Shown here: positions 71 to 49,867 of the stretch, one piece after another
How positions within the stretch are numbered: position 1 is the stretch's first letter
How the letters are laid out: every line of letters begins with the position of its first letter
Source: Epithemia pelagica
Lineage: Eukaryota > Protista > Bacillariophyta
Length of the DNA: 64,000 bases
Assembly (NCBI GenBank): GCA_946965045.2
Contig: OX337229.1
Location: 248,001 to 312,000, forward strand
Direction of reading: 5' to 3'
The notes under the pieces: model-generated
What the model saw: only the letters and a program-made list of their open reading frames with translations
The model's database searches: none
What the model was told of the DNA's origin: nothing
Program-made: the position numbers and the translations under genes

Positions 71-264
71 CTTGTCGGTTGTCGGTTGCCAGTGGTACGT
101 GCGCACAGTCCTGTCGGATGTGAATCTTTCCTACTCAACCTACTCACTCTACCCCTTCTTCTGTTTCTACCGATTGCTAAATTCTGCTCCTACTCCTACA
201 TCAGCTGAGTCTAGCTAGAGTCCTTGTCGGAGATGTCCTTGTCGGTGTGACGGTTGTCGGTGTT

Positions 265-2539: not shown

Positions 2540-2587
2540 AGAGGCGATCTATCTATCCATCGGACGATCCGAATTTGCCACCTCGTT

Positions 2588-4111: not shown

Positions 4112-4414
4112 TATGGTTTCTGTGTCGCTGCTACTTCTTATGACTTCTTTGACCGCTTCTGTCGTTGTGCTTTCGACAACTCCTGGTCACGATCGTTTCT
4201 TCATACGGCATCGATATCCCATCTGGAATATGGATTCTTGGTATGTTGAAGATTTTGGGATCTTTTTGTTGCCGGGACAGCGTTTTTCTCAGTCGTGTGT
4301 GGTCAGTGCTTTTGGATGCCCTCGATAGATATGCTATCTACCCCAACCAAAACGACCATGCTGAGTATCTGAGCGGCATCGGCTGAACAAAAAAGGCCAC
4401 CTTCTATATCCACA

Positions 4415-4416
<2 letters not shown>

Positions 4417-4450
<34 letters not shown>
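4417..4450. repeat. (TC)17 microsatellite
   Basis: Counted; identical length in copy B (11688-11721). Confidence 0.95.
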
Positions 4451-4453
<3 letters not shown>

Positions 4454-4693
4454 CGAACACATGGGCAAAAGAGAGTCCCAGCAGTCCTGCTCGTACTCGA
4501 TATAATGATTTGGATGGGAACCAAAGATCCTATTGCTGTTCAAATAGTTGTTGTTGAAATAGTATACGGCACACGATGAGAGTCTCCTAGAGAAGTACGT
4601 GTGCCTCTTGCGGACATGAGAAACCGAGTCGTGTACCATGAATAGACTTAAACCGGCTCGTTTCGATCGTTCTATATATGGACTGTGAAAATC

Positions 4694-6109
4694 TCAACAG
4701 TAGACATAGGTATGATGTCCCTTGGCTCGTCTACTTGATCGTTGTCGTCGTTGTCCAGATCCTTGTGATGGCGGTGATGATCTTGGACTTGTGGCGGTGC
4801 TGTTGTTGGTGGTGTGATTCTGGGAATGAATGGTAGATCCATATCCTCGTCGTCGTTGCCACACGAGAAATGGCCTGGAAGAAGAAGAAGAAGAAGAGGG
4901 CCCACCAAATGAGTTCCAAGACGAGGAAGTAGATGCCGTGGCAGTGGTGGTGACAGTCGCTACGGATCCATTGCCAGACGAAGAAGTGGTTCCAACGGCC
5001 GATGGACGTGTCCTGGATCGAGGAATGACACGATTGTCTTGTTCTTGTTGTGGTTGCTGTTGATGTTGATGATGATGTACGGTCAAAACATTGGGTTGGC
5101 CATGACTGGACTGACAAGAGGATGGACTGGAGCCATGAGGGCGAACCCACGGGCCACCCATGCGACTGGGGCTTGGGTTTTTGGTGGTGGTCGAGGCGGC
5201 AGCGGTGGCATCCGCAACCGAGGTTGCTTTGGATGTGACCCAAGTACGACACCAATGAGAAGAACCAGCATTAGGTCGACTTGCACAGGAATGCCCCGCA
5301 ACGGTCCTGTTGCGCCTACGAGACGACCCTTGTGAAGGACTAGAAAAAGAAGAAGGTGGACCCCCAGGGCACTGTCGTGGGGAACCATGGCAGCGTCCCA
5401 TTCGTCGTCGTCCTGGATGTTGTTGTTGCTTTGCTGGAGGAAACGATGAAACCTGATGTGGCACGGTTGGACTGGGTGATGATGTTGTGGTGGTTGTGGT
5501 CGTCATGGTCGTTTCCAAGGTGGATTCTGTGCTGGTGATTGTGGAATGATCATTTTCATCATCTTCTTCTTGTGGATCGCTTTCGCTTTCTTTGTCTTCT
5601 TCCGGTACACTCGGGGGAAGAATGGAAAATGGTGGGAGGACAACAATCTCCGGTTCTTCTTGTGCTTCTGGTGAGTCATTATCAACAACAGGAGCCACGT
5701 AAATCTCGGGTTCTTCCAAAGAGGCCTTGTGGGTTGCTTTTTCTTGTTGTTGTTTTCCAGCAGTGCGAGGAGTCGTCGTCGTCGTTGTTCTTTCTCGTTT
5801 CAAATGGAATCGAGCCGGAATCACCACCACTGTTGTTCCCCAGGAACCATTCACGTCGACGACGACGATGATGATGATCCTGATCCGCATGAGACACTGT
5901 TGTTGGTGTCGTCGAATCATCCAAAGGTATCCTGTGACTTTCAAAGGTGGACAACACACTATTCGGGGGAACAAAGAGAATTGGATACAACCAAGTTTGT
6001 AGCGTAGGTTGATGGATGAGTCGAGTCGGTGCGCTCCTTCGCCATGGTGGATTGTTGTTGTTTTGGCTTTTGATACTTTTCTGTTGTCCGCAGGAAGAAA
6101 CATGGCCAT
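4694..6109 (-). CDS. Low-complexity Ser/Thr/Glu/Gln-rich hypothetical protein, copy A (true frame and start uncertain)
   Basis: 471-aa ORF conserved in frame with 12166..13539 despite many in-frame indels (EPEIYVAP...EPEIVVLPPFSILPPSVPEE); no recognisable domain. Confidence 0.4.
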   Translation of the reverse strand: MAMFLPADNRKVSKAKTTTIHHGEGAHRLDSSINLRYKLGCIQFSLFPRIVCCPPLKVTGYLWMIRRHQQQCLMRIRIIIIVVVDVNGSWGTTVVVIPARFHLKRERTTTTTTPRTAGKQQQEKATHKASLEEPEIYVAPVVDNDSPEAQEEPEIVVLPPFSILPPSVPEEDKESESDPQEEDDENDHSTITSTESTLETTMTTTTTTTSSPSPTVPHQVSSFPPAKQQQHPGRRRMGRCHGSPRQCPGGPPSSFSSPSQGSSRRRNRTVAGHSCASRPNAGSSHWCRTWVTSKATSVADATAAASTTTKNPSPSRMGGPWVRPHGSSPSSCQSSHGQPNVLTVHHHQHQQQPQQEQDNRVIPRSRTRPSAVGTTSSSGNGSVATVTTTATASTSSSWNSFGGPSSSSSSSRPFLVWQRRRGYGSTIHSQNHTTNNSTATSPRSSPPSQGSGQRRQRSSRRAKGHHTYVYC

Positions 6110-6480: not shown

Positions 6481-7434
6481 ATGATGATGTGTGATTGTGA
6501 TTACTGTTACGAAAAGATGATCAGCTCCGAATGGGCTCTGTTAGTTGCTCCTTTTGTGACTCTCATACTGTGTTACGGTGTCGCTGATGTCCTCGATGAG
6601 GCGAAACTTATCGTCCAACACCTGTTTCGGGTCATTTTCAACAAGAAAAGTCGTACTACAAGTAGCGAGCACGCGGAGCTTCGACACGAACATGCGGAGC
6701 TTCGACAGCTTCGACATGACAAAGCTCAGCTTCAACAACAGCTGGCCATTGCCGAAGCAGAGCTTGCTGCGAAGAACTGCAAGAATGGTCGGCAGGAAGA
6801 TGGAGAGATCGAGATTCGCGATCGCGAGGAGGAGGAGGTCGACGTCGACACTGTTGCTGTTCTGCCTTGCGAGTTCGACGCTGACTTGGACTTCCCTCCT
6901 CTCGCACTCGCACTCGCAGAGGATCTCGAGGACGACGAGGAGACCCCTCCAGTCGACCGTCATGAGCCTGAGCCCGAGCCCTTGCTCATCCCTGACAACG
7001 ACGACGACGAGATCACTTTGGGGCACGACTCACCCCCTCGAAACTCCACCCCTTCTTTCATGGTCGCCAACCCTCCTTCCCCCACCCCCACCCCCACCCA
7101 AAAAGATACCTCGCCCTCGCCTCACATTGACGAGAATGCCCCCCAAAGCGTGATCGAGAGTTCCTCCGGCCCCGAGAACTCCCCGCGTTTGGGTAGGATC
7201 CTTACTGTTGCCTACTCCAACAGGGCACGCCGAATGGTGCACGTTCGACGATCCGCTCGTCTTTTGTCCGCGGGTACGGGTAGTGGTGGAGTTGAAAAAA
7301 ATCCAAAAAACCCAGAAAAAGCAAAAAAATCCAAAAAAACCAGAAAAAGCAAAAAAATCCAAAAAAAAACCAGAAAAATAACTTGTCGGTTGTCGGTTGC
7401 CAGTGGTACGTGCGCACAGTCCTGTCGGATGTGA
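6481..7434 (+). CDS. Orphan protein: N-terminal hydrophobic helix, short coiled coil, acidic/Pro-rich linker, RRSARL motif, Lys-rich tail
   Basis: Intronless ORF (ATG 6481): WALLVAPFVTLILCYGVA; HAELRHEHAELRQLRHDKAQLQQQLAIAEAELAAK; LGRILTVAYSNRARRMVHVRRSARLL. Lies in the 1.4-kb spacer between the duplicated copies. Confidence 0.55.
   Translation: MMMCDCDYCYEKMISSEWALLVAPFVTLILCYGVADVLDEAKLIVQHLFRVIFNKKSRTTSSEHAELRHEHAELRQLRHDKAQLQQQLAIAEAELAAKNCKNGRQEDGEIEIRDREEEEVDVDTVAVLPCEFDADLDFPPLALALAEDLEDDEETPPVDRHEPEPEPLLIPDNDDDEITLGHDSPPRNSTPSFMVANPPSPTPTPTQKDTSPSPHIDENAPQSVIESSSGPENSPRLGRILTVAYSNRARRMVHVRRSARLLSAGTGSGGVEKNPKNPEKAKKSKKTRKSKKIQKKTRKITCRLSVASGTCAQSCRM
7293..7381. repeat. A-rich ~28-bp tandem repeat, second copy
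   Basis: gaaaaaaatccaaaaaacccagaaaaagcaaaaaaatccaaaaaaaccagaaaaagcaaaaaaatccaaaaaaaaaccagaaaaataa. Confidence 0.85.
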
Positions 7435-7575
7435 ATCTTTCCTACTCAACCTACTCACTCTACCCCTTCTTCTGTTTCTACCGATTGCTAAATTCTGCTC
7501 CTACTCCTACATCAGCTGAGTCTAGCTAGAGTCCTTGTCGGAGATGTCCTTGTCGGTGTGACGGTTGTCGGTGTT

Positions 7576-7790
7576 ATTGGGGAAGAGTGCCATAGTTGCC
7601 CCTGGAGAATCCGTTGATTCATCCGCTTCCCTTATTCTAGTGTCGGTTGTCGGTGTTATCACAAAATCCTGGTGGCACGAGGACTTTGTCCTTGTGTCAT
7701 CAGGTATGGCATGGAGACTTCGGTCTCTGTGCCATTGGGGAAGAGTGCCATAGTTGCCCCTGGAGAATCCATTGATTCCTCCGCTTCCCT
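7576..7790. repeat. 57-bp direct repeat pair, copy B (7576-7632 and 7734-7790)
   Basis: Same sequence as 265-479 at offset 7311. Confidence 0.9.
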
Positions 7791-8292
7791 ACCCGCTGTA
7801 CTTGTGGCCGCGTTGACGACGCCAGCGGGCTTGCGGGAGAGATGCCATCTCTTCTTACCAAGAGCCACACATAAGAAATTGCGCCGACACACTATACTCC
7901 TACGCATTGAAAAAGACTAAAAGTTGGAGCATACTTTCAGCAGGACGCGTTCGACAATGAATAATGTTATGGAGGACTACAGCATCTACATATCTTCTTC
8001 TTCTTCTTTTTCTTCCACCGGATGCAGTCTGTCGGATCGGGGTGACTCCCCCCAACACACACACACAAGAAAGGAATCTACCTCGTTTGGTCTCCCATGG
8101 TCATGCGCTCGTGACCATGGAATCGGCCGTACCATTTCTCTTGGCGTACGATTGTGGCGGGGGGATGTTGCGGTTGTTGTTGTGTTTTGCATGGTACTTC
8201 ACTCAACGACGACAACACGGTCCATGGCAGGACTCTCGGCTGCTCCAGGCTTGGCATGCAGCCAACCGAAACTCGATTCTTCTTGTATGAAT

Positions 8293-9852
8293 TCATGTCT
8301 TCATTCTTGTCTGTCGTCGTCGTGTTAGATTTGATATTCCAATTCTCCCGATTTGAGTTCCATCCATTCTGAATCCGCCCGTCGCAATCGTTTCAATTCT
8401 TGCGTCTTGGTGTGAATCGTGGCTTGCAATTGCTGCAATTGCTGTTTGGTAACCAGACCAATTCTTGTTCCAAGACGTAGCCTTGTCGTTCGCCGGGAAC
8501 GTGTCCCCCGTGGCCCCGGCTAATTGATAATTCACCAGACTGCCGGCCACACTGGGAGCGTGTTTGGCATACCACGAAGTGCGGAGCAAACTGTTGGTAC
8601 CGGCTTCCTGGACGCGGACCGTTCCATTCCACAGTCTGTCGCGACGCAATGCATTGAGAACGTGCAAATTTTCGGCGGCCAAGGGATTGGCGGTGAAATT
8701 TTCGCGTTCCAACAAGTGACGATTCAAAATGATCCAAACGTGTTAGACCGGTGGTTCGGGAAGAGCCTGGTACAAAAGCCTTGCTCATGTTGGCCAACCG
8801 GGTTTCCTTTTGACTTTTGCAGGGACGATCATGTTGCATGTCCGGTTGAATCCGGGCATGCAAACACATGTAGCCAGTTGGAGGCGGCGAACCAGCCGCC
8901 AATGGTGGTGTTTCAAGCATGCGAGTCTGGGTGGATTGAATCATTTGTGCCAGGTCCGGATGCGGTCGAAAGGCGCCTTGCATCAGGGCCAAATCGGCCT
9001 TGTGTCGGCCATGCTCTTGAGGTTGATTGAAAAGGCCCTTGATATACTGCTTGTAGGCGACAAAGAGTTTGGTTTGTTTCCCGTAGCCATAGGGCAAGGT
9101 GGGATTGTCCGAATTCATCGGCCACTGACTGTTGGATCGCATGTGAATCAAGGAGGGATGATGAACCACCAAGCGAGGCAGAGGTGGTTTGTTGTTTGTA
9201 GTGTTGTTGGTTGTACTGTTGGATATCATCGCCGTGGTGCTCGTATATTGTTATTCCAATGCACAACGTCAAACAAGCCTGCTGCGGCGCCGTCTGTTGC
9301 CACCACAAGGAAGGAGGATCAGAATGCTGAGTTTGGTGCTGCACGTCAAATTTCATGTACCCTCCGACAATGTGTGTGGCCGCACCATGTTGACCGATAC
9401 AGGTGGATGAGCCCAAGACGGTGTGCCGCGGAGTCAGAGCTAGATTAGACTGTTGTGGATTGGGTTGTGGTTGTTGTTGTGGATTGAGTTGTGGTGATTG
9501 TGCTTGGAATTGTGGTTGCACCGGTGGTGATGGTGGTTGTGGGACCGTCGCAATGCGATGCAAAATATCTTGGGCGGCATTTCGAATGGTGAGGGCCCTG
9601 GGAGAGCCACAGGGAATGGGAATGCTCAAGACCGAATCCAAGACATAGTGGGCAATCGGAACACGATAGTCGAAACATACTCTCCAGTGTCGTTGTTCGG
9701 GTATAGGAGTACACAGCGCCACCACACAAGGGGAGGTTCCTTGTCCTGCGTATTGTTGTTGGAAGGTTGCAAAAAAGGATGATGATAAAGGACAGGAGCG
9801 AGGGCGAAACCACTGCATCTCTTTCCTCTCGACCGCTTTCATTGAATTTCAA
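8293..9852 (-). pseudogene. Frameshifted O-fucosyltransferase-like gene, copy B
   Basis: Near-identical fragments (8393..9229, 8293..8727); also split over frames. Confidence 0.5.
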
Positions 9853-9899
9853 ATAGGCGATCTATCTATCCATCGGACGATCGAATTTGCCAACTCGTT

Positions 9900-11382
9900 T
9901 TACTTGTCAAGACTTTTCCCTTCATTCTCCACGAACACGCCTTCATAGTACTGAACAGCCTCTTTGCTCCATTGATAATTGTGTCCCAGAGGATCCTGGG
10001 TATTGTGCTTGTCAAAGTTGAAAAAGACAATCTTGTCCTTGATTTGGTCACAAATCTGACCTTGTCGATCCCCGTTGAGACCCAAGGGCGCCGGATGATT
10101 CGATCTACTGCCATAGACGATTCTACGGTACCAAACCGCAGTTACCTCCGCATCAGTCCTGTCGATACTACTATCATCTTTTACGAAACCGTCCTGAAGA
10201 ATCCGATTTGGTCGATCCTCGTTGGCCCCCAAGGTAGTGTTGGTGGGAACAATTTTCGAAAGAACAAGCCCCCATAGTTTGCCACCCGACCAACGCACCA
10301 CATGAGGGATGCGAAGAAACAAGTTGCGATACAGGACCGGCATGAAATTGGTCCGATACAGGCAGGTTCGATAGGTTAGAGCAAGGTCCGTGGTGCTATA
10401 CAAGACATGAACCTTGGATCGCGCCAGAGCGGCAATGTCTCGACCTGCATTGGTGAAGAAATCAAAGTGTGGTCCCACAGCAGATCTATTCGTAGGATCG
10501 GACGCACGTCTCGAATCCGCCTGTCTCGAAAGGCCCGTTTGAAAAGACTTTGGAGGAGGAATCCATTGTCGTTGTGAGGAGGAAGAGGAGGTGTAATCGT
10601 TGAAAGCCGTATCAAAAATGTCTTGACGCACGTCCGCTGCGACCATGAATATGTGATCAAAGACTGGAGCACAATCATGATTAGTATTTTCTCGATGCGA
10701 TTGAGCAAGGGCTTGCAACACATAATTGCCCATGCTATGACACATGAGACACTTGTTGGTTGGACCAGCACCAAACTGTGCCAGCAACTTCAAGAGTCGT
10801 CCAAAGGATTGCGCCAAGCGTTGTCCGGCGAGGGGTGCCAAGGTTTCGCGATCCTCATAATAGGCCGCGGCCGATTGCGTAAGTTCGATTCGGTCGCGCA
10901 TTGTATTCCGCAGCCTTGTTCAGAGTCGTTTCCGGGGGGACCGTAAAGCCATGAATGTACAACAAGATCGGACGTTTGTTTGTGTTGCCCTCATTCAGGC
11001 GACGGATTATTTCCGTCGCGTTTCCATCATTGTCGCCACAAAATAAGACCCGGCCTTGAAATTCAGGAACAGGCGAGCGAGGAGAATCCTTGTTTTCTTT
11101 CGTGGGTTCTGGGAATTCCAAGATACAAGGGTAGTCCAAACTTCTGGAGTTGCGAGAAAAGGTGACGACATTGTTGGAGCTGGAGGCATGTCGTTCTCCC
11201 ACACCCACCACGACATACGGCAAATACCAGTTTGCCGAATCGCTTGAATCTCCAGGAGTATCGGCGCTCTGGATCCTATTCGTATGGAATGCATTGTCTC
11301 CAGTACCACTCACCATCGCCAGGGCAACGACAGCAGAAAATGGGAACAAACCGATCCAGAGCAAAATCTGTTTCGCATTCAT
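9900..11382 (-). pseudogene. Secreted DUF900-type alpha/beta hydrolase, frameshifted, copy B
   Basis: ORFs 10855..11382 (signal, ILLYIHGF) and 9900..10901 (CHSMGNYVL, IFMVAADV). A ~30-nt out-of-frame deletion near 10890 removes VIPVIW. Confidence 0.8.
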
Positions 11383-11685
11383 TATTGTTTCTCTGTCGCT
11401 GCTACTTCTTATGACTTCTTTGACCGCTTCTGTCGTTGTGCTTTCGACAACTCCTGGTCACGATCGTTTCTTCATACGGCATCGATATCCCATCTGGAAT
11501 ATGGATTCTTGGTATGTTGAAGATTTTGGGATCTTTTTGTTGCCGGGACAGCGTTTTTCTCAGTCGTGTGTGGTCAGTGCTTTTGGATGCCCTCGATAGA
11601 TATGCTATCTACCCCAACCAAAACGACCATGCTGAGTATCTGAGCGGCATCGGCTGAACAAAAAAGGCCACCTTCTATATCCACA

Positions 11686-11687
<2 letters not shown>

Positions 11688-11721
<34 letters not shown>
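11688..11721. repeat. (TC)17 microsatellite
   Basis: Counted; identical to 4417-4450. Confidence 0.95.
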
Positions 11722-11724
<3 letters not shown>

Positions 11725-12165
11725 CGAACACATGGGCAAAAGAGAGTCCCAGCAGTCCTGCTCGTACTCGATATAATGATTTGGATGGGAACCAAAGATC
11801 CTATTGCTGTTCAAATAGTTGTTGTTGAAATAGTATACGGCACACGATGAGAGTCTCCTAGAGAAGTACGTGTGCCTCTTGCGGACATGAGAAACCGAGT
11901 CGTGTACCATGAATAGACTTAAACCGGCTCGTTTCGATCGTTCTATATATGGTATTTGTTGGATTCCAAAGGAACAGAATACTAGGAGTAGCTAGCATAG
12001 TATACATGTCTACTCTAGGGAGCTCAAGAGGGCCACAATGCAGTGCGGCAGCAGGCGTTGTGATGTGTGGTCCCCCCATGGATGATTGAGTGAAGAATGA
12101 TACTCGTCTATTGTGGTGTATGGACAACCAGACACATTATGCTGTATATACAGACTGTGAAAATC

Positions 12166-13215
12166 TCAACAGTAGACATAGGTATGATGTCCCTTGGCTC
12201 GTCTACTTGATCGTTGTCGTCGTTGTCCAGATCCTTGTGATGGCGGTGATGATCTTGGACCTGTGGCGGTGCTGTTGTTGGTGGTGTGATTCTGGGTATG
12301 AATGGTAGATCCATAGCCTCGTCGTCGTTGCCACACGAGAAATGGCCTGGAAGAAGAAGAAGAAGAAGAGGGCCCACCAAATGAGTTCCAAGACGAGGAA
12401 GTAGATGCCGTAGCAGTGGTGGTGACAGTCGCTACGGATCCATTGCCAGACGAAGAAGCGGTTTCGACGGCCGATGGACGTGTCCTCGATCGGGGAATGA
12501 CACGATTGTCTTGTTGTCGTGGTTGTTGTTGCTGTTGATGATGATGTTGATGTACGGTCGAAATATTGGGGTGGCCATGACTGGAAAGACAAGAGGATGG
12601 ACTGGAGCCATGAGGGCGAAGCCACGGGTCACCCATGCGACTGGGGCTTGAGTGTTTGGTGGTTGTCGAGGCGGCAGCGGTGGCAGCCGCAACCGAGGGT
12701 GTTTTGGATGTGACCCAGGTACGACACCAATGAGAAGAACCAGCATTCGGTCGACTTGCACAGGAATGCCCCGCAATGGTCCTGTTGTGCCTACGAGACG
12801 ACCCTTGTGAAGGACAAGAAAAAGATGGACCGCCAGGGCACTGTCGTGGGGAACCATGGCAGCGTCCCATTCGTCGTCGTCCTTGTTGTGGGTGTTGTTG
12901 TGCTGGCAGATATGATGAACTCTGATGTGGAGCGGTTGGACTGGGTGATGATGTTGTGGTGGTTGTGGTCGTCATGGTCGTTTCCAAGGTGGATTCCGTG
13001 CTGGTGATTGTGGAATGATCATCCTCATCTTCTTCTTCTTGTGGATCGCTTCCGCTTTCTTCGTCTTCTTCATCTTCTTCTTCCGGTACACTCGGGGGAA
13101 GAATGGAAAATGGTGGGAGAACGACAATCTCCGGTTCTTGTGCTTCTGGTGAGTCGTCCACAGCAGGAGCCACGTAAATCTCGGGTTCCCCCAAAGAGGC
13201 CTTTGGGGTTGCTTC

Positions 13216-13257
<42 letters not shown>

Positions 13258-13539
13258 TCCAGCAGTGCGAGGAGTCGTCGTCGTTGTTGTTTCTCGTTTC
13301 AAATGGACTCGAGCCGGAATCACCGCCACTGTTGTTTCCCAGGTACCATTCGCGTCGGATTGACCATGACGACGACGACGATGATGGTCCTGATCCGCAT
13401 GAGACACTGTTGTGGGTGTCGTCGAATCCAAAGAAGAGTTGCGCGTCGTCGTCATGAGGAGTGTTGGTGGTTGCCGTTTGTCTTGGACTATAGTCTGGTT
13501 GTTCTGGTGTTTTGTGGTAGAGTTTGGTTTTGTTTTCAA
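12166..13539 (-). CDS. Low-complexity hypothetical protein, copy B, with poly-Gln expansion
   Basis: 457-aa paralogue of 4694..6109; (CAA)13 tract at 13216-13256 versus a short Gln run in copy A. Confidence 0.4.
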
Positions 13540-22083: not shown

Positions 22084-23792
22084 GTTGTTGTGTGCTTCCG
22101 TGTCGGTTCGTTTGATGTTTACAAGAAGAAATGTTGGGGAGAATCGAATTGTGACATGGCGTTGGCTCTTGGTAGTTCACTTAATGTTGTTTTTCGTTGT
22201 CTTGTTTTCATCAATTTGCTTGAGCGGATCAAAAGTAGCCTTTTGAATCAACGAGAGGAGGATGTCAGTGTTAGATGGTTCTGAATGGAATCCATCGATC
22301 GGCAAGAGTTGGTGTCATGTTGATGTCGATTGGTTCCTAGTTGGGCATGTGGCAGATGGCAGCACACGACACGAAATGCTATTGATGAGCGTGCACTAGT
22401 TACGAATTGCGCCCATCTGATGGAATGTTACAGCCTTGGTGAAAGGCTGTTGAAGGACTTTATCAGGCCTATCAAGGAATTTTATCTTTCGCTCTCATTT
22501 TTCGGCATGGGACTTAAGAGTTCAACACCTCACGGTTTACGGCTTAGGCAGCATTCTAATAATTGATGGGGGATACACAATCTTGGAAGTTGGAGCGTAC
22601 CTCTAGTAGTTTTAGCATACAGTTCGAAGGGGCTCATTATTTCTGGTTTCGCATAAGGCGAACAAACCAAAAACAACACTAGGACACCTACCTTGTCAGT
22701 CCCAAATTATAAATCGTTCATCTTGTGCTTCTAGACCTCTTTTTTGTTCTAAACCTTTCCTCCACCAAGACACCTTTACCTACACCGTACATAAATCCCG
22801 CAGCCGCCGGCATCTGTGCTTTTCACCCATGCATCAAGCGACTGGAAGCTATGCTACTAGGAGCAGTTCTGATCCAACAAGGAGCCTCTAGCCACAAAAA
22901 ATCTGGTGAGAGCTCTGGATCTCTTCCATAGCTCTGATCCCACCATAAAACCCTCCGGTGAACAACATACCCAAGGACCTTCATTACAAGTAGACCAATT
23001 CCAAGGTGAGTGCTTCAGGTTTAGGTTCGCCCTTCGCCCCATTCCCACTCTAGACGTAGGAGTAGGTTGGCACCATCATCTTGAGGAAACTATGAGGGTT
23101 ACCTCCACCCCTACCATCCACTTGACCTCGGCATTCTTGATATTCGTTTTTTTTACAGGGCAATAAAAAGGCAATAGTATAATTTCCAGATGGAATCGGA
23201 GTATTCTATGGCGTGAAACCCCCCAACCAGTTCGTAGTATTTCTCTAGGTTCCGGAAGCAAGACGTAGCTATCCGTTGTTTTTTGGCAGTCATCGGACCT
23301 GTTAACTGTATAGTGTAATAACTACTCCATGAGATCTACCTGTCGATTTTACCGGCTAGATTCTTGGAACTCATTTCTTCCATCATGATGAGATGATGAT
23401 ATAGAAACCAGAACGCGAGTTGGGTACATTGCCAATGCTGCAAGTCGAGAAGCTAAAACGGGCCATCCAGACAACAATCAGCAGCACTGTTCATGCCTTG
23501 GATGGGAACTGCAGCGAATCCACACGGGATTTCTTTGGGAGCCAGAGACCCGAGCTTTAGTGTTGTTTTTTGTCGTCCAATCCAAGAAGAAGAAAAACTT
23601 CGACACACCTTTCCACGTGAATCCCACGTAGTTTCGGCGCAGTCGGTATTGTGAATAGTATTCTTATGGAGCGAGAATTCGATTCCGCCCTCTCCCGTCA
23701 CACGTCCAAGTTCGAGTTACCAGCTTCTCACCAGAACCGTACAAAACGACCGTAGACACCAGAGACAGATGCTGTCCGATGTAGATGCACAC

Positions 23793-24192
23793 GAATCCCC
23801 GAGTCTGTTCCTGGACACGTGCCGTGTGCATGTATGCTAAGACCTCTTGGAACCTGGAGCATGATCGTCAAGATTCGATCCATGTGACGTTTGGAATTTG
23901 GATGCCGCACGTCAAGTCATGGGTTTTCTCTTCAAGAGCATACATCATCCGGTGATGATGGTGCACTCCCTGCAAAAGAACGATACGACAGGTTTTTGTC
24001 TTGAGTTTTTGTTTCCTCCCAACAAACACACACACATACAAACGAAGACCCCAGTGTCGGAATCTATGCCACGAGATACGCAAGAATCCTAGAGTCTGTT
24101 CCTTGACACGTGACGTATGTGTACTGGGACCTCTTGGAACCTTGGGCATGGACGCCAAGATTCGATCCCTGGATTTGGGATGCCGCACGTCA
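23793..24192. repeat. Degenerate ~110-120 bp direct repeat (23793-23914 vs 24084-24192)
   Basis: Shared blocks gagtctgttcc(t/-)ggacacgtg, gacctcttggaacct, caagattcgatcc, ggatgccgcacgtca. Confidence 0.75.
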
Positions 24193-33597: not shown

Positions 33598-35555
33598 ATG
33601 CCCTTTTTTCGAGCCTCGACCGAAGCCACCGAGGCATCCCTCCAACCAAGCAACAACATCCACAATACGACGAATTTGGGCACGGCTGCCAGTCCAAACA
33701 CTAGGAGTCCAGCTACGGTTCGACGACGGGCCCGATCGCGCGATGCGGCGGCTCGAGAAACCTATCGGTTAAAAGTGGTGGAAGTCTCGGCCGTGTCCCG
33801 ACACCATTCTCATCGTCATGAGACCACCGAATCGTCTCCTGTTTTTGTCTCGCCGCCCATTGAATTGGGATTGCAACGCTTATCGTCCATAGACGGCAAA
33901 AAGCCACGTCGGCGCTTGTTTGGACGGGCCCTCCACAATCCACAACCAGAACAACAAGTCCAGGATCAAATTGTCATTCATCACAACAGTGTACGAGAAA
34001 TTCCCACTACTACAACAATCGCCGAACCAACGACCAAACCAAGCACCCGGTTTCAACGCAGTCGATCGAGCAGTGGCAAAGAAAATCATCATCATCATCT
34101 TCCGGATCTCACTGAGGGGAGCAGCAGTAGCAACACTGCTACTAGTAGTATTCATCCCCCTGTGGTGGGGGAGGATCTCCAAGAACCGGCGGCACCACAC
34201 CACTCCCGATGGCGATTTCCTCGTGTCTTGCGTCGATCCACGATCGAACAGTCTCGGAATCATCCCGACCAACCACAAGAACAAGACGATGACGACGACG
34301 AGGAGGAGGAACGACCCTTGCCCCCCGACAGCCCCCCAAACCAACCAGTCTCCGATCCTGACCCAACTCGTCGTCGCAGTTGTTCGCACAGTCAAAAGGC
34401 TCGTCGACGATCCCGATCCACTGCACCGCCCTCCGCCTCGATACAGACTCCACGAACCATTTCCTCTCCACCCACTTCTACTTCTACGTCGTTGCTATGG
34501 AAGAAATCCCGTTCTACCACCAACAACGTGTCATCCTCCTCCCGGGATCCACCGGGCAACAACGAACGACGGTCGTTGGGTGGTACTCTCCGAGCCGCTG
34601 CTGCATGTGGCAATGGCGAGGAAATGGAGGAATTGCGTCAAATGTGGTCGCAACAATACCGAGAACACCAACAACAAGGAACCGGAGGTCCGCTCCCATC
34701 GACCGACCTTGGGAAAGAGGGACGGACCGGCAGTGATTCCTCTCGTCGGCTGCGGTCCAAGAACCCAAACGCAGCGGCCGCCGAAGAGGATTCGCTCTTT
34801 GATACCCTCGAACCCAAATCCGATGTGGATTCCTTGAAGAATCCATCTCCTGCTTCTCAACAGGTACCAGCACGTCGTGGACGTTCCAAACGATCTCCCT
34901 TTCCCGAATTGGAAGGGGAACCAGCCTACGAAGAAGAAGAATCATCACGCTTGCATCAACCAGAAGAAGAACGACGATTGGAACAACAACGAAATGGTGT
35001 CCGCTTTCGTTCCGATGCCATTGCCAACAAGGTCAACAAACGGTTTTCCACGACGCAACAACAACAACAACACTCATCCCTCACGGATCCACCCAAACCA
35101 CTCTATCCCCAATCCAAAACCCGGTCCAGTCCTTCCAAGGTACGTATGTTGCTCAGTATAGAAAACCACTGGGTGTCGATTTGTCTCACATATAAATGTG
35201 CATGGTTCATGTCCAATCACAGTATACTGTTCCCGACGATGATAGTACGGCTACCGAAGAGGATGCCCGTCGGTTGACCGTCTTTCAAGAAATTAGTGAC
35301 ATGTGCATGGAATTGACCGCCTGTCCCTTTGCCGCTCCGGCGTCGTCGGTGTTGTTGTTGAACGACGAACCCGTACGACGAAAGGAGGACGAAATGGTGG
35401 ATCTCGATTTACGACTTCGAGAAGAACGAGAATGCCGTGGACTCGTCCTTTGTGGGGAAGATGACGAAGAGGAAGAGTACACGGATGACGACGAAGTTTC
35501 GGGAATTGTATCCATGGACGACGAATATTCCAGCTCGGAACCGATCCGGCAATGA
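33598..35555 (+). CDS. Disordered Ser/Arg/Pro-rich hypothetical protein, 2 exons (intron 35140-35222)
   Basis: ATG 33598 (MPFFRAS). GTACGT...CAG intron joins SK|YTVP in frame to the last exon ending SMDDEYSSSEPIRQ-TGA (35553-35555). Confidence 0.75.
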
Positions 35556-35771
35556 CAATAGTGTCATTTACTGCTAGGAGTACGTGTTTGGGCTTGGGAT
35601 GACCCTTCAAACGCATCTTATCATTTCTAGAAGAGCAAGAAACCGTGGCTATTGGAACTATTGGAACAACTACGATTCCGTACTCCTAGGTTTCCCTTTT
35701 CATGCGGATAGGCGTAGCACAGCCAGCAAAACTTCGAATTGGATAGAGGAGTCGTAGTCACGAATTCGGTC
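35510..35771. repeat. Left direct repeat (last codons of the host gene plus 3' UTR-like sequence)
   Basis: First 48 bp (atccatggacgacgaatattccagctcggaaccgatccggcaatgaca) identical to 37941-37988; remainder clearly similar but diverged. Confidence 0.95.
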
Positions 35772-35925
35772 TGGACGTCCTCCGTTCTCTAAGCAAAACC
35801 TTCACAAAGGCATTACAAGCAAGAGGTAGCTATTCCCTTTTGGTATTGAGTTTTGTTGCAAGCAAGTACTCCTATAAATCGAAGATCAAAAGATGGAAGA
35901 GCAAGAATAAGCAAGATCCCACTGC

Positions 35926-37920
35926 ATGATGGCTGACAACTTTTTCACCATCCAAAATATTACAAAAGACAATCAAAGACCCAAGGGCTTCAGTGAAAGA
36001 GTGGAGCGATGTGTATACCGGAAGAAACAGATTGACGCCATCGTGGAGTTGCTGTTTGAAGCGGAAACCAAACGTCACATTCCTGGAGTTTACATGTCTG
36101 GTCCTGCAGGGGTGGGAAAGAGTGTTCTGGCTTACATGATTGCGCAGATCTTCAAGTTTGAGAAGGGATGGTTGACGATTTACGTTTCGGACTGTCGGTA
36201 TTGGAGTCCACTAGAAACTGTGGAAGCCAAGGCTTTCTTTTTGGATCGTGTTCGAGAGGCGCTCGACGGCTACAAGCAAAACCCTTCAGTCTTTGATAGA
36301 ATTCGAGGAGAAATTTGCGAGAACAATAATGACACAAGTTCTGAACCGGACTACTGGAAAAAGGCTGCGGCAATCGGAGGCATGAAAGAAAAAATCACGG
36401 TTCTCTATAGAAAAACCATCAGTCTCCTTGCTAACCAGGATCAAGAAAGTGTACTGTTCGTGTGCGATGAAGTCAACGTTCTGTGGAACAAAGAAAATCA
36501 GTTCCAGAAGGCTCCATGGAACTTAACAAATTTCCAGCCAACAAGGATACGAAGAGGTGCCCTACTTCTGACGGGAACAACAGACGAGTTTGTTTCGTCT
36601 ATTCCAAACGGCCTCGAGCGTCATGTTGCTCTGGTTGCGAAGTGGGAGAACGAGGAGATTGAGTTGATGAAACTTTTACCCGAAAGCAAGATTTTAAATG
36701 ATATTGCGCAACTAGACACGGACTCCTGGGATGCGCTTGTCGACGCCGCCGGAAACATACCCCGTGAGCTGCGGCACTACGTCGCGGACAACAAATCCAC
36801 CTCACTATCCAAACGGGTCAGAGACTGTGTGGAAGACGCTGAAGAGCATGTAGACAAGAAAACGAGAATGGAAATCCTCTCGGAAATCGAGAAGAGCATT
36901 TCGGTGTGGCGACAGAACAACATAGTTCGTCACACTCGCATGCTCGAGAAGGTCCTAACTAGTGATCAGAATGTCAATCTGTTCCAAGACCGTCTTTTTG
37001 AAACTTGCAAGTTTATCTTTTTGGAAGGGCGTGCTGCTCTGTCGAGTTTTTCTGTCCTACGAGTACCAAACTTTGTCATAACGGAAGAAAATTGTATCTA
37101 CCCAACAACCATCGATGCACAAATTGTGTACTTCAAGTGGTTCCGTGGTGAGGAAGAAAAGCGGACTGCGAACAATCGAATTTCTTGTGTGGCGACTTTG
37201 CTTGACCACTTCCTCTTCAAGGCCATCTCAGGCGGTGAGAGGGGAAACTCCTTTGAAAAGTATTTGGCCGCTAAGTTGGCTATGCAGGGGAAGGGCGCCT
37301 TCAATTTTGCGTATACTCAGCTTGCTACTGAGCAGCAAGTCAGAATGACACTACGGGTCGACCATCTACTATACGCAAGGGCTGACAGCCCTCCAAAAAT
37401 CTTTCAGCTCTACCCCGATTTTTCACTGCTTACCCATCCTGGCATTGAAGGGGGAGAGGCTCGAATCGATTTGATTCACTACACAAAAAACCGTGTGACT
37501 TTCATTGAAGCAACAGATGGTAACTATAGGGCTTCAAAGATCCCGCAGCTGGACGACAACCAGCAGAGAGGAACACTCATTTTGAATACAATACGTAAGT
37601 GGCTCGGTTGGGATGTTTTTGAAGTGAACATTGTGTCCACACCAGCGGCGGGGCAGCACCAGAATTCAGGGCAGAAGCAACTCGTTGTTACGTATCGGGC
37701 CGAGAGGTCGAATCGTACGCGGCCTAATCCACCAAGTGTGCAATACATTATTGTCACCACCTGTCCGAAGACCGTAAAACTCCAGGGAGACCGGGCATGC
37801 AAATACAATTGGATTGACGTTTGCTACCTTGACGATCTTATTGATTCTGGTATCTTCGAAGAGAATCACAGAAAGGAGATTCTTGCAAAGCAAGAGGTTG
37901 ATGCTGGGTACATATCATAA
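35926..37920 (+). CDS. Crinkler/RHS-type (CR) P-loop NTPase + PD-(D/E)xK restriction-endonuclease-fold protein, 664 aa, intronless
   Basis: Walker A GPAGVGKS, Walker B LFVCDE, AAGNIPREL helical motif, RGNSFEKYL helix, RIDLIHY...VTFIEAT nuclease core. No N-terminal header domain (in-frame stop at 35908). Family call from motif recall. Confidence 0.7.
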   Translation: MMADNFFTIQNITKDNQRPKGFSERVERCVYRKKQIDAIVELLFEAETKRHIPGVYMSGPAGVGKSVLAYMIAQIFKFEKGWLTIYVSDCRYWSPLETVEAKAFFLDRVREALDGYKQNPSVFDRIRGEICENNNDTSSEPDYWKKAAAIGGMKEKITVLYRKTISLLANQDQESVLFVCDEVNVLWNKENQFQKAPWNLTNFQPTRIRRGALLLTGTTDEFVSSIPNGLERHVALVAKWENEEIELMKLLPESKILNDIAQLDTDSWDALVDAAGNIPRELRHYVADNKSTSLSKRVRDCVEDAEEHVDKKTRMEILSEIEKSISVWRQNNIVRHTRMLEKVLTSDQNVNLFQDRLFETCKFIFLEGRAALSSFSVLRVPNFVITEENCIYPTTIDAQIVYFKWFRGEEEKRTANNRISCVATLLDHFLFKAISGGERGNSFEKYLAAKLAMQGKGAFNFAYTQLATEQQVRMTLRVDHLLYARADSPPKIFQLYPDFSLLTHPGIEGGEARIDLIHYTKNRVTFIEATDGNYRASKIPQLDDNQQRGTLILNTIRKWLGWDVFEVNIVSTPAAGQHQNSGQKQLVVTYRAERSNRTRPNPPSVQYIIVTTCPKTVKLQGDRACKYNWIDVCYLDDLIDSGIFEENHRKEILAKQEVDAGYIS

Positions 37921-37940
37921 TTTCCTAGATTGGCCGAGAG

Positions 37941-38233
37941 ATCCATGGACGACGAATATTCCAGCTCGGAACCGATCCGGCAATGACAGTATAGTGTCTT
38001 TGACTGCTAGAATGCTTGTTTGGGTTTGGGGTGATCCATGCGCATCTTATCGTTTCTAGAAGAGCAAGAAACCGTGGCTATTGGAATACTACGATTCCGT
38101 TATTCTCCGAAGGTTATTCTCCTACTCCTAGGAGTAGGAGTACTCCTTTACGGTTACTATTGCCTACGGGTAGGCGTAGAATAGCTAGCAAAACTCCGAA
38201 TAGGATAGAGGAGTCGTGGTCACGGATTCGATC
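37941..38233. repeat. Right direct repeat
   Basis: Copy of 35510-35771 (offset 2431 at the start), with ~30 extra bp that include a perfect 22-bp palindrome at 38119-38140. Confidence 0.95.
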
Positions 38234-39258
38234 ACGCACAAGCAGTTTTGTGTGGTGTGAGATTTTGCATCTCTCGCATTCCTGCTCCGACATGATGAAG
38301 GTTGACGAACCATGAACCTGTTCCGGCGACCCCAACATTTCCTGTGCAACACAATTAGGACGATGCCGCCCGCATTCTGTTTTGATGGGTCGCCATAAAA
38401 ACAAAAACAGCACAACAGTAACAGCAGTACCACACAACGAGATATCGAATCCGTCTCCATACACACCGCAAACGACGAGAATCCACCCTTGTTCCAAGAG
38501 ACCGCTCATTCCTGCCACTTCCTTCGATCCAAAAGAACAAAGAAGACCTCATATACATTGATTCCATCATGAAAGATCAATTTGAAGGACTCTTGAACCT
38601 CTATTCAGCAGCATCTTCAACCAAATCCATGGTTCACTCCAAACAACAAGACGACGACCACGGATTGTCTCCACCATCCGTCGCGCTGCGTTCCCACCAG
38701 CATGTCATGCTCCAGCACAACACTACGTCTCGCAACTATCATCTCCAAACGGCAAACATTTTTGAAAACCAGATACAATCCGACACGGATACGCTCAACC
38801 ACGTTTACTGCCAAACCATGATCCCCAAACCCGAGTTTTGTCAGCAACAATGACTTGTTGTTGTAAATCGAGAGGTGTGGGGAGTGTAATAGAGGGGAAG
38901 TTTGCACGTTCCATTCTTACAAATCTAGTTTATACAGCTCGGTAGATGTGCAACATGAATCAATCGAAAGTGTTTGCTTGCTTCCGTATCATAGGACTTG
39001 TTACCTTTTTTATCGAGCCTTGAATCGTTCTGGAACAAACACTTGCGGTCCCAATGGAATAAGAGCTTCTCGATTCGTCAAGGGTTGTCTCAAGGCAGGA
39101 CTAGGTTCCGAAAGACTCTTCTCGGAGAATATAATGTCTTTATGTGAAAGCGCTGTGTCGACATTCTTAAAAAGTGAGCAACTGCTGTTGTCGAGATGCA
39201 TGCTTGACCAGAAGTGTCACACACTGGATGAAAGCATCTCTTATCCGTGCACTCCTTT

Positions 39259-44728: not shown

Positions 44729-46205
44729 ATGAGCGAAGCAAGTAGGGCAAAACGCAAGCGAGAAGAAGATAACCCATGCGACGGCGAGGTGGAGGAGATG
44801 GCAAAGAAACAGAAACTCTATCAAGAGCTTTGGAGCGAGGCACAGACACGGGGCTAGTGATCAAGTTTCTGTTTCTTTGCCATCTCCTCCACCCCGCCGT
44901 CGCCTGGGGGGTTGCTCACTAGTGAGATTCGTGGTGTCCTTGACGATATAAAAGATCTACATTGCAAAATATATACATTGCGCGAGAAAATAGAAATGGA
45001 TCGAATAAAAGCCGCATATGCAGTAAAAGATGAGGAACTGAAAGCAAAAAACGATGCAGCCCGAGACCTTCATCGAACATCCATCGAGCAAACATACCTT
45101 GATCCGAAGAAAAACTTTTGCCTTCCTCCTCTGATCTTAAACAATGCCGTAAAACCCAGTGTCTCGGGAAACAAATTCCAAAGGCCAAGATTGAGGTCCG
45201 TACAGAGCACTATGTGCATCCATCTCACGTTCGCATTCCCGTCCAAGCTAATAATGCACTGATTCCAAGTGTCTTGGGAGCCGAACGCTATTTCGAAACT
45301 CTTGGTTTCGAATACGCTAACGAATTCGGGTTGTGCGTGAGTATGATCAAAGATGCTTGCAGATGTTTAAAGCTACGTCAAGCTCGTGTGGCAACGGAGA
45401 TTTCAATTTTCTTAATGAAATCAGACATTGTCGTTGTCCTTCGAATCAAGGGAAAGATCATATTTGCCGTTGAAGTGAAGAGTCCGGATGCGCGATATGG
45501 AAACCACAACGATCAGGTCTTTACATCGGAGAACACCAGCGGCCAGATCTGGTCCTACTTGCTGGCAATGAGAAGCACAGGCATCCAGCAACCCCTTGGA
45601 GCGGTCATGACGTACAACAAGATTGCTCTCGCGTCATTGGAAAGCTTCGACAATGACGCTGCACATGCGAAAATTGTGAAAGATGTAGAGGAAACACTTT
45701 CTTCCAACGAAGCGCCGCCGGACAGAGTGCAACAAGTTGCTGAAAAGTGCGAAGACCAGATCACTAGCCCAATTCGCGAGAGCGTTACTGTCTCACACCT
45801 CTTGCAAGACGCCAATGACACTAAGAGGAAGGCTTCCGCAGAAGAAGATGTGGACCGAGTTGTTTACTACTCACAAGTTTTTGAGAATGACATGTCTTTC
45901 CTTTTCTTCTTCAAGCCATTGAAATGGCTTACCAAAAAGTTGAGTCCAATGTTGCTACTCAAATCCCAGACATTAGCCATGGTGAGTGTCTGGGAAATAG
46001 GGCTGTGTTCAAGATTGGCAAGGACTTCTACACTTGGGTCAATACACGTTCGTACACTATGATCAAGAAAGAGAAGATAGCGTTCACTGCCAATCTCCAG
46101 GATTTTCCGGATCCTTCGTCGCAGACATTCTACCTTTTGGGTGAACTGGGAGTTGGGAGCCATGCATCGGTGATTCTTGCCTGCAATTCCAGTTGTCGCG
46201 TTTGC
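44729..46205 (+). pseudogene. Decayed restriction-endonuclease-fold + truncated protein-kinase gene
   Basis: MSEASRAKRKRE start (44729), tandem stops at 44855-44860, single-base frameshifts near 45165 and 45890. Nuclease-like MKSDIVVVL...IFAVEVKSP...GQIWSYLLAM, then kinase Gly-loop LGELGVGSHASVILAC...RVC ending just before the beta-3 Lys. Confidence 0.65.
44773..44908. repeat. 51-bp inverted repeat with 34-nt loop (fold-back hairpin)
   Basis: The reverse complement of 44773-44823 matches 44858-44908 with 4 mismatches (29-bp perfect run gtttctgtttctttgccatctcctccacc). Confidence 0.95.
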
Positions 46206-48409: not shown

Positions 48410-49867
48410 TTGTTGGAACCTTCCGTACGATTGGCCATGGCGACCGTCCCACCCTTGTACGGGGTTTATATTGACTACATCTCGTTGGAACTGATTCAAT
48501 ACATTGATATTCCCTGCAACGTCAACTATGCTCAAACCGTTCGCAATGAAGCCGAAAATGTCTTGGAAGGCTTTGCCATGTTTGACTGCAATTTGGGTGT
48601 CACAGTCTACAATGTCACATTGAATCGACAAGGCTGTGATCCCCTGGACGACACGACGGTGCACATTTTTGGTGGCACGCTCTTTGTGCAAGAAAAGAAC
48701 AACAAGGAACCGCACTTGGAACCGTGGGAGTTTCACGATTGCATCAATTTGGCCATGAATTCCAACGAGTTGGTTCGCGAAGTGGCCTTTGAGTTTCCCT
48801 TTGTCGTGAATATTACCTATACACCCCTGCAAACACCGTCGGACAGTCCTTCGCAATCCAGAGGACCAAGCGTGGCGCCATCCACATTGCCGACCCTTTC
48901 CAGTGTACCCAGTACTCGTCCCTCCTCCTGGCCTTCGCCGTCTCCCTCGCTCATTCAAAACATTGGTGGTGGCACCGATTCCCCCACCCCGACACCGACC
49001 CTGCATCCAACCTCTCCCGTGCCATTTGAGTTTCCCTTTGTCGTGAATATTACCTATACACCCCTGCAAACACCGTCGGACAGTCCTTCGCAATCCAGAG
49101 GACCAAGCGTGGCGCCATCCACATTGCCGACCCTTTACAGTGTACCCAGTACTCGTCCCTCCTCCGGGCCTTCGCCGTCTCCCTCGCTCATTCAAAACAT
49201 TGGTGGTGGCACCGATTCCCCCACCCCGACACCGACCCTGCGTCCAACCACTGCCATGCCATTCTCCGTGGCACCAACCGTTGCACCGACAGGGGGTATG
49301 CCCACCATCACGAGGTCTCCTTCGCTTTCACCCACACGACTCGACGAACGACCCGATTTTTCGCAAATTGTCGACGATCGAAATCGTGGCAATGACGACG
49401 ACAATGATGGCCTTCCCCGCTATGGCCTGGTCCTGATCGTGTTGGGACTCCTCATATTCCTGTGGATGCTCTGCTGTTTGTGGTGGAACCGTCGAGCGCT
49501 CTTTCTTCGGCACGACGAACGTGACCAAGGAGACATTTTGGATTACGATCAAGAACGTCGTCGTGGTTTGCCGGAACAGGCACCTGCGGAATATGCCTCG
49601 AAAGAATCCACCTCCCAATCGTCCATGCAAATCTTGGACATTGCCACTTCTGATGACGACGACGACGAAGAACACGAGCCCTATTCGTATTACAATGACC
49701 CATCCTATTATGATCCAGATCCACAAGAATATCATCATGAACATCATCATCATCATATGGATGCGCATTCGTTGGTCACGGGTCGCTGGTTTGACGATGT
49801 GTCTCAATTGGAGGACCCATCGATTCCTTCCGTCCCATCCGGACTGTCCTCGGGTGTATCGTCGTGA
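48410..49867 (+). CDS. Type I membrane protein: Cys-containing ectodomain, duplicated PTS stalk, TM, acidic/His tail (5' end uncertain)
   Basis: IDIPCNVNYAQTVRNEAE domain; 79-aa stalk present twice; TM YGLVLIVLGLLIFLWMLCCLWW then NRR; tail ending FDDVSQLEDPSI. In-frame stop at 48377, so the leader is missing or frameshifted. Confidence 0.8.
   Translation: MLEPSVRLAMATVPPLYGVYIDYISLELIQYIDIPCNVNYAQTVRNEAENVLEGFAMFDCNLGVTVYNVTLNRQGCDPLDDTTVHIFGGTLFVQEKNNKEPHLEPWEFHDCINLAMNSNELVREVAFEFPFVVNITYTPLQTPSDSPSQSRGPSVAPSTLPTLSSVPSTRPSSWPSPSPSLIQNIGGGTDSPTPTPTLHPTSPVPFEFPFVVNITYTPLQTPSDSPSQSRGPSVAPSTLPTLYSVPSTRPSSGPSPSPSLIQNIGGGTDSPTPTPTLRPTTAMPFSVAPTVAPTGGMPTITRSPSLSPTRLDERPDFSQIVDDRNRGNDDDNDGLPRYGLVLIVLGLLIFLWMLCCLWWNRRALFLRHDERDQGDILDYDQERRRGLPEQAPAEYASKESTSQSSMQILDIATSDDDDDEEHEPYSYYNDPSYYDPDPQEYHHEHHHHHMDAHSLVTGRWFDDVSQLEDPSIPSVPSGLSSGVSS
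48788..49249. repeat. In-frame 237-bp tandem duplication (79 aa)
   Basis: 48788-49012 vs 49025-49249; only 3 substitutions seen (tcc/tac, tgg/ggg, cat/cgt). Confidence 0.95.

Follow-up and report, generated by a model that had tools for sequence, protein, structure and literature searches.

A header-less Crinkler-type ATPase-nuclease gene between two diverged copies of its neighbour's 3' end in the diatom Epithemia pelagica

How does a lone nuclease gene come to lie between two direct copies of the 3' end of the gene upstream of it? The question is raised by a locus of the diatom Epithemia pelagica that we studied within a stretch of 64,000 nucleotides (contig OX337229.1 of assembly GCA_946965045.2, positions 248,001 to 312,000 of the forward strand). 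This whole stretch is called here the window, and coordinates without a prefix refer to it. A preliminary description, made from the sequence, had interpreted the locus as a gene-restoring integrative element: a 2431-bp circle carrying the nuclease gene and its own copy of the 3' end of the upstream gene (hereafter the host gene) would have recombined with the chromosome within a 48-bp core. We arrive at a plainer answer. The locus is best explained, with a probability of about one half, by one ancient insertion in which ordinary host repair duplicated the target and no dedicated integrative element took part. The arrangement from which the argument starts is the following.

35510..35771, plus strand: left repeat copy, 262 nt, comprising the end of the host coding sequence (CDS), its stop codon, the host 3' untranslated region (UTR) and intergenic DNA.
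35510..35557, plus strand: 48-nt core, without differences among the four copies (left and right in each of two haplotypes).
35612..35657, plus strand: second conserved block, 46 nt, with 45 of 46 positions identical to 38041-38086.
35772..35925, plus strand: unique 5' flank of the nuclease gene, 154 nt, transcribed in run X2.
35926..37920, plus strand: intronless open reading frame (ORF) of 664 aa, predicted to encode a header-less Crinkler-type nucleoside triphosphatase (NTPase), a helical linker and a nuclease of restriction endonuclease (REase) fold.
37921..37940, plus strand: spacer of 20 nt between the ORF stop and the right repeat.
37941..38233, plus strand: right repeat copy, 293 nt, faster-evolving and rich in insertions and deletions (indels), whose first ~100 nt appear to be the 3' UTR of the nuclease gene.

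The two repeats are direct and were recovered both by a repeat search and by a pairwise alignment. They are identical at 84% of their aligned bases (216 matches, 41 mismatches and 42 gap columns), and a whole-genome DNA search located the repeat sequence in two copies only in the 60.5-Mb genome. Both of its edges are sharp, as the sequences immediately to the left of the two copies are unrelated and the similarity ends on the right at 35771/38233. The repeat starts 48 nt before the end of the host CDS, taking in its last 15 codons and the stop codon, while the one intronless ORF between the repeats begins 154 nt after the left copy and ends 20 nt before the right copy. The preliminary description had the structure right: the two direct repeats around an intronless 664-aa ORF are recovered by the repeat search, by the alignment and in a second haplotype, the repeat does start sharply inside the last exon of the upstream gene, whose intron is documented by a spliced contig of run X2, and the host ORF is left intact. 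Its statement that the first 48 positions are identical holds as well, but the divergence assigned to the remainder is patchy and not uniform. The core is followed by a 2-nt indel and then by a mosaic of similarity, in which ~80% identity at 35558-35611 gives way to the 46-nt block (45/46) and, more distally, an indel-rich stretch precedes an 85-nt block that is ~80% identical.

Also in line with what had been proposed, no long terminal repeats (LTRs), terminal inverted repeats (TIRs), poly(A) or genes for a recombinase or reverse transcriptase (RT) were found. The repeat search revealed no LTRs at the element and no TIRs, the sole inverted pair being 31 nt long, 71% complementary and located inside the repeats, and no A-run was seen at the insert end, 20 nt past the ORF stop. 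According to Pfam, the sole ORF between the repeats has no RT, integrase or transposase domain and no methyltransferase domain, and the insert, with this one ORF, holds no methyltransferase partner gene. No Rfam match to a known RNA family was obtained for the repeat, nor did folding point to a structured RNA there (z-scores of only -0.2 to -1.2). Past its TAA stop, the frame of the ORF stays open over 37921-37985, giving six codons and then the host's last 15 codons with their stop; this continuation is identical in the second haplotype, and the chance of such an arrangement is one in three.

The simplest way to explain away a gene between repeats is an assembly artefact, here a misjoin of the second repeat copy or of the gene position. 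Nothing beyond the general risk that attends repeats speaks for it, whereas an independent assembly from ENA (locus L007) shows identical architecture and spacing of repeats and gene, and the Logan contigs of four runs bridge the junctions of unique and repeat sequence and break exactly as a two-copy 48-nt core predicts. A misjoin is contradicted by these two sources, which uphold the structure, and we consider it next to impossible.

The L007 locus is syntenic with the window over 14 kb and ~98% identical across the element, and it shares the repeats and the core. L007-type variants appear in the runs, which places it in the same population, and its possession of the same structure at this identity means that the event is older than the split of the two haplotypes. 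A four-way alignment of the left and right repeat copies of the window and of L007 leads to the same conclusion, because at 29 sites the left copies differ from the right ones in both haplotypes and the duplication therefore predates the split. Outside the core, left and right copies mismatch at 19.6% of aligned sites; the repeats are thus old and only ~80% identical there. Between haplotypes, over the whole repeat, the left copies differ by 2.3% and the right copies by 6.9%. With its 97.7% identity the left copy is the more constrained of the two, and the right copy (93.1%) evolves about threefold faster, contains the majority of the indels and is indel-polymorphic among the runs.

The four-way alignment also disclosed an exchange between the two copies.

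35580..35611, strand not assigned: gene-conversion tract with nine clustered sites, at which the right copy of L007 has left-copy states.

At seven of the nine sites the right copy of L007 shows the left-copy state and the right copy of the window differs; at the remaining two, both L007 copies share a state unlike that of both window copies. A single left-to-right conversion tract in the L007 lineage would account for all nine. The 48-nt core, for its part, has 0 mismatches against 9.4 expected (P about 8e-5), and its identity is non-neutral. Coding constraint on the left copy together with conversion into the right copy accounts for it, so that a crossover point in the core is not required. 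The identical core had been taken as the mark of such a crossover, and this reading has become unneeded, as constraint and the visible conversion tract suffice.

The repeat-gene-repeat topology is most simply that of an insertion that duplicated its target, and from it we infer both the insertion and the repair process. The gene would have arrived once, long ago, downstream of a low-complexity diatom gene, and break repair or replication template switching would have duplicated ~262 bp of the target, that is, the last 48 nt of the host CDS, the stop codon, the 3' UTR and part of the intergenic DNA. Thanks to this duplication the host gene would have retained both its C-terminus and its 3' end, in the left copy. 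The nuclease gene, bringing only 20 nt past its own stop, would use the right copy as its 3' UTR. The copies would since have diverged to ~80%, with patches kept alike by coding and 3'-end constraints and by occasional gene conversion, and the gene would now be a fixed, expressed and dispensable resident.

Expression of the gene was followed through the contigs of run X2, which behaves as complementary DNA (cDNA) because it holds a spliced contig. Both the host gene and the complete nuclease ORF are covered by these contigs, of which one runs uninterrupted over 35510-36230. Coverage ends within ~100 nt of the start of the right copy (bin 37864-38047) and is zero at 38048-38415, and the conserved 46-nt block is located where it stops. 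Since close homologues share the position of the C-terminal end, the 3' flank that the insert itself contributes is just 20 nt. The right copy thus appears to supply the 3' UTR and the end-formation signals of the nuclease gene. The gene is expressed, and it is intact in one haplotype and frameshifted in another by the following change.

36745..36747, plus strand: 1-nt deletion (frameshift) in L007 and in runs X3 and X4; intact in the window and in X2.

The deletion falls in the conserved DAAGNIPREL region and splits the ORF frame in L007, and in X3 and X4 it is the only form seen. With one haplotype frameshifted, the gene must be dispensable in at least some strains.

What the gene encodes was examined by profile searches and structural modelling, which gave the following features.

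36007..36645, plus strand: P-loop NTPase domain, ~residues 28-240 (Pfam AAA_16, E 2.6e-07).
36100-36123, plus strand: Walker A motif GPAGVGKS with K65, invariant among close homologues.
36466-36471, plus strand: Walker B D181-E182, invariant among close homologues.
37072..37845, plus strand: predicted REase-fold PD-(D/E)xK domain, from a model with a predicted local distance difference test score (pLDDT) of 87.4, its VIA-align matches and conserved residues.
37255-37257, 37468-37470, 37507-37509 and 37537-37539, plus strand: candidate catalytic residues E444, D515, E528 and K538, respectively.

The AAA_16 match lies at residues 28-190, with weaker matches to DAP3, nSTAND and NACHT. An exhaustive search with a family profile gathered 218 representatives, mostly fragments from metagenomes and transcriptomes, and the profile matches P0114 at E 5.2e-08. 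In this protein the Crinkler header PF20147 (E 4.6e-22) precedes the same NTPase and PREL motif and the beginning of the same C-terminal region. The 664-aa ORF itself gave no Pfam match to that header at E <= 1 and has no room for one, since its NTPase domain begins at about residue 28. A protein-language-model search pointed to Mucoromycota DAP3-like clusters, to a Crinkler-header cluster (0.92) and to bacterial clusters of ATPase with Mrr/Hjc.

A model of the whole protein from four sequences (pLDDT 59) was too poor to use, and the C-terminal 295 residues were modelled from a 29-sequence alignment. Foldseek found no match to this model at E <= 0.001. In an exhaustive VIA-align comparison, the top 50 matches were almost all PD-(D/E)xK nucleases with modest Z scores, the best being 6.5, and included N.BspD6I (Z 6.5), Card1, AF1548, Shedu, NucC, McrC, FokI and EcoRII. 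The conserved residues fit the REase fold, with E444 in the first helix, D515 invariant in the 29 sequences, E528-x-T, and K538. Close homologues keep the family motifs across species at 33-45% identity, and the family-wide conservation of the Walker and E-D-E-K motifs indicates a working protein family. The GC content at third codon positions (GC3) of the ORF, 0.51, is inside the range of the neighbouring genes. On these sequence and model data the 664-aa product is predicted to be a header-less Crinkler-type P-loop NTPase with an REase fold, in which the NTPase presumably controls the C-terminal PD-(D/E)xK nuclease. It is a new header-less diatom representative of the known Crinkler-type NTPase-REase proteins. 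The preliminary description had named a Crinkler-type NTPase-nuclease and had expected these two folds, and the Pfam P-loop NTPase, the homology with P0114 and the REase-fold model with its VIA-align matches agree with it.

We looked for signs that the gene moves, beginning with further copies. Six-frame protein, REase-profile and DNA searches of the 60.5-Mb genome found no close paralogue beyond the locus itself and a 94-nt relic of the gene's 5' end on the minus strand at G000:C18:230738-230832 (L029:4739-4832). The relic consists of the last 30 nt of the 5' flank and the first 17 codons, is 78% identical overall and 93% identical over 55 nt, and is intergenic, with a low-complexity gene on either side and nothing else of the nuclease gene close by; a loose end that run X3 shows at 35926 is explained by it. 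Distant relatives of the NTPase are numerous. A broad NTPase profile and one paralogue protein detected at least 30 loci on many chromosome pieces, which encode proteins of 520-620 aa distantly related to a third NTPase subfamily (613-618 aa), among them two head-to-head loci on C18 and, on C11, copies interrupted by internal stops. The Epithemia pelagica genome has a large Crinkler-like superfamily.

Seven of these distant paralogue copies were inspected, each in its 10-kb context. They occur either in tandem or segmental duplications or as sharp-ended single-gene units of 2.3 kb and 3.45 kb in different chromosomal contexts, and target-derived flanking repeats, target site duplications (TSDs) and TIRs were found in none (0/7). 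A 573-575-aa paralogue is present in four copies, within 2.27-kb units that are 94% identical (C5:2558536-2561001 and C5:3232245-3252310; L021-L023); three of the copies share an array of tandem or segmental duplications, and the fourth is 0.67 Mb distant. At L022 the paralogue stands between 1214-bp direct repeats, 99.75% identical and 6.7 kb apart, that resemble parts of the array unit. The 3.45-kb unit, which carries a 594-aa paralogue, is found at C10:1296293-1299770, C10:1316644-1320121 and C7:2703472-2706904 (L024-L026); its copies are 97% identical and its sharp ends are the same in two chromosomal contexts, with neither TSD nor TIR. The two C10 copies belong to a segmental duplication of more than 8 kb with 100% identity and lie next to a 681-aa ORF with a weak TraG-D_C match. 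The expectation that each paralogue would be flanked by repeats of its own target was thus not borne out, either by a close paralogue, as there is none, or by the seven distant ones.

Among homologues in other organisms, L004, the only one with usable flanks, has no flanking repeats, L005 and L006 are too short to show any, and none of the three is syntenic with the locus. P0004 and P0006 were set aside, having contigs of insufficient length or no DNA. A metagenome scan for homologues returned one weak and short locus.

Concerning an empty site, no insert-free genome in which the repeat could be aligned to a single-copy target was found. A search with the host gene recovered only the second haplotype and one distant, non-syntenic homologue (L008:10001-11800), which is colinear over ~500 residues and has its intron at the same position. 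No nuclease gene stands beside it; however, it is not usable as an empty site because synteny is lacking and a C-terminal tail of roughly 70 residues is missing. As the L008 homologue ends ~70 residues earlier, the acidic C-terminal tail, including the duplicated codons, is lineage-specific. Every sampled haplotype carries the gene, L007 included. The empty allele that had been anticipated was seen neither in L007 nor in the four runs, where no joint skipping the 2431 nt occurs, although the contigs are blind to such an allele, since the 48-nt core is longer than the 31-mers used and the empty allele would create no new 31-mer. Contig depth is the same over the gene as over its flanks (103-116 vs 99-119 in X1; 129-145 vs 127-140 in X4), so that there is no sign of hemizygosity.

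Three routes could lead to the observed topology, namely fill-in of a staggered break or template switching with capture of the gene, a crossover with a circle, and a later copying of the repeat, and none of them is decisively singled out. We favour a one-off repair event because what is seen is old, single and fixed, with no element-encoded function and no second insertion, and because the supposed crossover core has a simpler, demonstrated cause. Several observations weigh against this preference. It is the topology alone that points to an insertion, because neither an empty site nor a gene-free orthologous locus was found. In eukaryotes, breaks staggered by as much as 262 nt are unusual. 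The relic on C18 shows that the gene, or part of it, was copied at least once more. With a ratio of non-synonymous to synonymous substitution rates (dN/dS) of 0.59 between its two alleles (12 synonymous and 25 non-synonymous changes) the ORF is weakly constrained, though one of these alleles is already frameshifted, and the ends of the transcripts are known from contigs, not reads. If the gene was instead resident from the start, ~262 bp of the host 3' end could have been copied later behind its ORF by template switching or ectopic repair, becoming a new 3' UTR. This would fit a right copy that lies only 20 nt past the ORF stop, is used as 3' UTR and evolves about threefold faster, as expected of a derived and less constrained copy, and gene conversion shows that the two sites interact physically. 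Such a history nevertheless needs a dispersed 262-bp copy with two precise ends at a distance of 2.2 kb, a rarer event than a target duplication, and it offers no reason for the near absence of a 3' flank belonging to the gene itself; we hold it to be unlikely.

A circle of 2431 bp, made up of the gene and one repeat, that integrates and excises reversibly by homologous recombination in the core with no recombinase, accounts for the topology by a single crossover, and this part of the earlier proposal stands, but nothing positive speaks for the circle itself. In its favour, the perfect 48-nt core is found on both sides of the gene in both haplotypes, the copies do recombine, at least by gene conversion, and the contigs could not reveal an empty allele. 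Yet the gene is present in all sampled haplotypes, X1 and X4 cover it as deeply as its flanks, the copies are old and so dissimilar outside the core (~80% alike) that exchange would be inefficient, and no second insertion or closely similar second copy is known from the genome. The model moreover presupposes the structure that it should explain, because the circle must already carry host sequence, and we rate it as quite improbable. The broader claim of a gene-restoring integrative element fares no better, as the gene has no closely similar second copy, no recombinase is encoded, no empty site was seen and the L004 homologue is free of flanking repeats. The encoded NTPase-nuclease, or a relative of it, might also cut the chromosome and favour its own gene's insertion together with a long duplication of the target. 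Bacterial restriction-modification (R-M) genes set a precedent, being inserted with target duplications of 46-423 bp, some of which overlap the 3' end of a neighbour, and with no other mobility gene (Furuta et al. 2010, PMC2853133). The gene does encode an REase fold, at least 30 loci of distant relatives exist in the genome and a relic fragment lies at a second locus. Against this, nothing ties the activity of the protein to the rearrangement, and the paralogue units inspected (2.3 and 3.5 kb, with sharp ends) lack flanking target repeats, which makes a nuclease-driven insertion very doubtful.

Compared with known systems, the locus resembles prophages and integrative and conjugative elements (ICEs) in having the 3' end of the target gene on both sides, an intact target gene and an identical core at both junctions. 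It differs from them in that the diatom locus has no integrase, the repeat is 262-293 nt long and diverged in place of a short and exact attachment (att) core, and the cargo is a single gene in one copy of which no excised form or empty site was seen. In eukaryotic capture of DNA at double-strand breaks (DSBs) or at staggered nicks, an insert becomes flanked by a duplication of the sequence between the offset nicks, as a one-off event with no enzyme of an element involved; a duplication this long around a complete, functional gene would be unusual there. The likeness to R-M gene insertion (PMC2853133) lies in a nuclease gene between long direct repeats in which no transposase or integrase is present, the repeats being genome-unique, tens to hundreds of bp long and overlapping the 3' end of a neighbour. 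Here, however, the host is eukaryotic, no methyltransferase partner is present, and the repeats, a presumed duplicated target, are old and diverged where the bacterial ones are near-identical. As for the protein, the review PMC5289972, which summarises the classification of Zhang et al. 2016, gives NTPase plus helix-turn-helix (HTH) plus REase as the commonest C-terminal architecture of Crinklers, and the diatom protein is similar in its P-loop NTPase, homologous to that of the header-bearing P0114, its helical linker and its REase-fold domain with conserved acidic and lysine residues. In contrast to Crinklers it has no N-terminal ubiquitin-like header, and so no evident delivery module; it belongs to a diatom that is free-living and photosynthetic, its subfamily has a single copy there, and a frameshift allele is segregating in the population.

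The neighbourhood of the element comprises the host gene and a transcribed feature downstream.

33598..35139, plus strand: host gene exon 1, an ORF of 514 codons for a low-complexity protein with no Pfam domain.
35140..35222, plus strand: host gene intron, 83 nt, GT..AG, documented by a spliced X2 contig with its joint at 35137->35221 (cut +2).
35223..35555, plus strand: last exon of the host gene including the stop, with its last 48 nt, stop included, within the left repeat.
38430..38938, strand not assigned: downstream transcribed feature, 509 nt, a cDNA-like contig whose depth of 239 is the region's highest in X2.

The dN/dS at the last exon of the host gene is 0.19 against L007. Relatives of the gene are P0154, an allele or orthologue that is 88% identical, and P0155, which is colinear and distant. 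Short ORFs of 94 aa (plus strand) and 96 aa (minus strand) overlap the contig at 38430-38938. Also downstream of the locus is a neighbouring pseudouridine synthase gene, whose best named orthologues come from the raphid pennate diatoms Epithemia, Seminavis, Cylindrotheca and Mayamaea; the Epithemia orthologue shows no synteny with the locus. Elsewhere in the window, a large direct segmental duplication (1-5918 / 7312-13428) has its copies 7.3-7.5 kb apart, with 4.7 kb at 94% and 1.3 kb at 89% identity. Two tandem duplications were noted, at 48782-49263 (245 nt, 96.7% identity, period 237) and at 23783-24192 (~130 nt, 76.5% identity, period 291), as well as a fold-back at 44773-44908, 136 nt long and 78% self-complementary, which is upstream of the ORF at 45118-46062 and unrelated in sequence to the focal element.

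As it stands, an interpretation of the locus as a mobile element is unsupported, and its genomic setting, although unusual, is probably accidental. There is an outside chance that bare single-gene Crinkler-type units spread by means of target duplications that are long and variable, with this locus as an old and decayed example. Were that so, the 3' end of the neighbour would stay intact while the newcomer gained expression signals, and the process would be a eukaryotic counterpart of bacterial R-M gene movement, possibly assisted by the nuclease. If the pattern proved recurrent in the gene family, it would represent recombinase-free gene mobility in a eukaryote, so far described only for bacterial restriction systems, and it would be relevant to the proposal that Crinkler effectors descend from selfish elements. 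The firm result is more modest: in this free-living diatom, whose genome encodes dozens of distantly related proteins, a header-less Crinkler-type ATPase-nuclease has been retained and is expressed, and a long duplication of the neighbour's 3' end apparently let this gene settle harmlessly between two copies that still exchange sequence.

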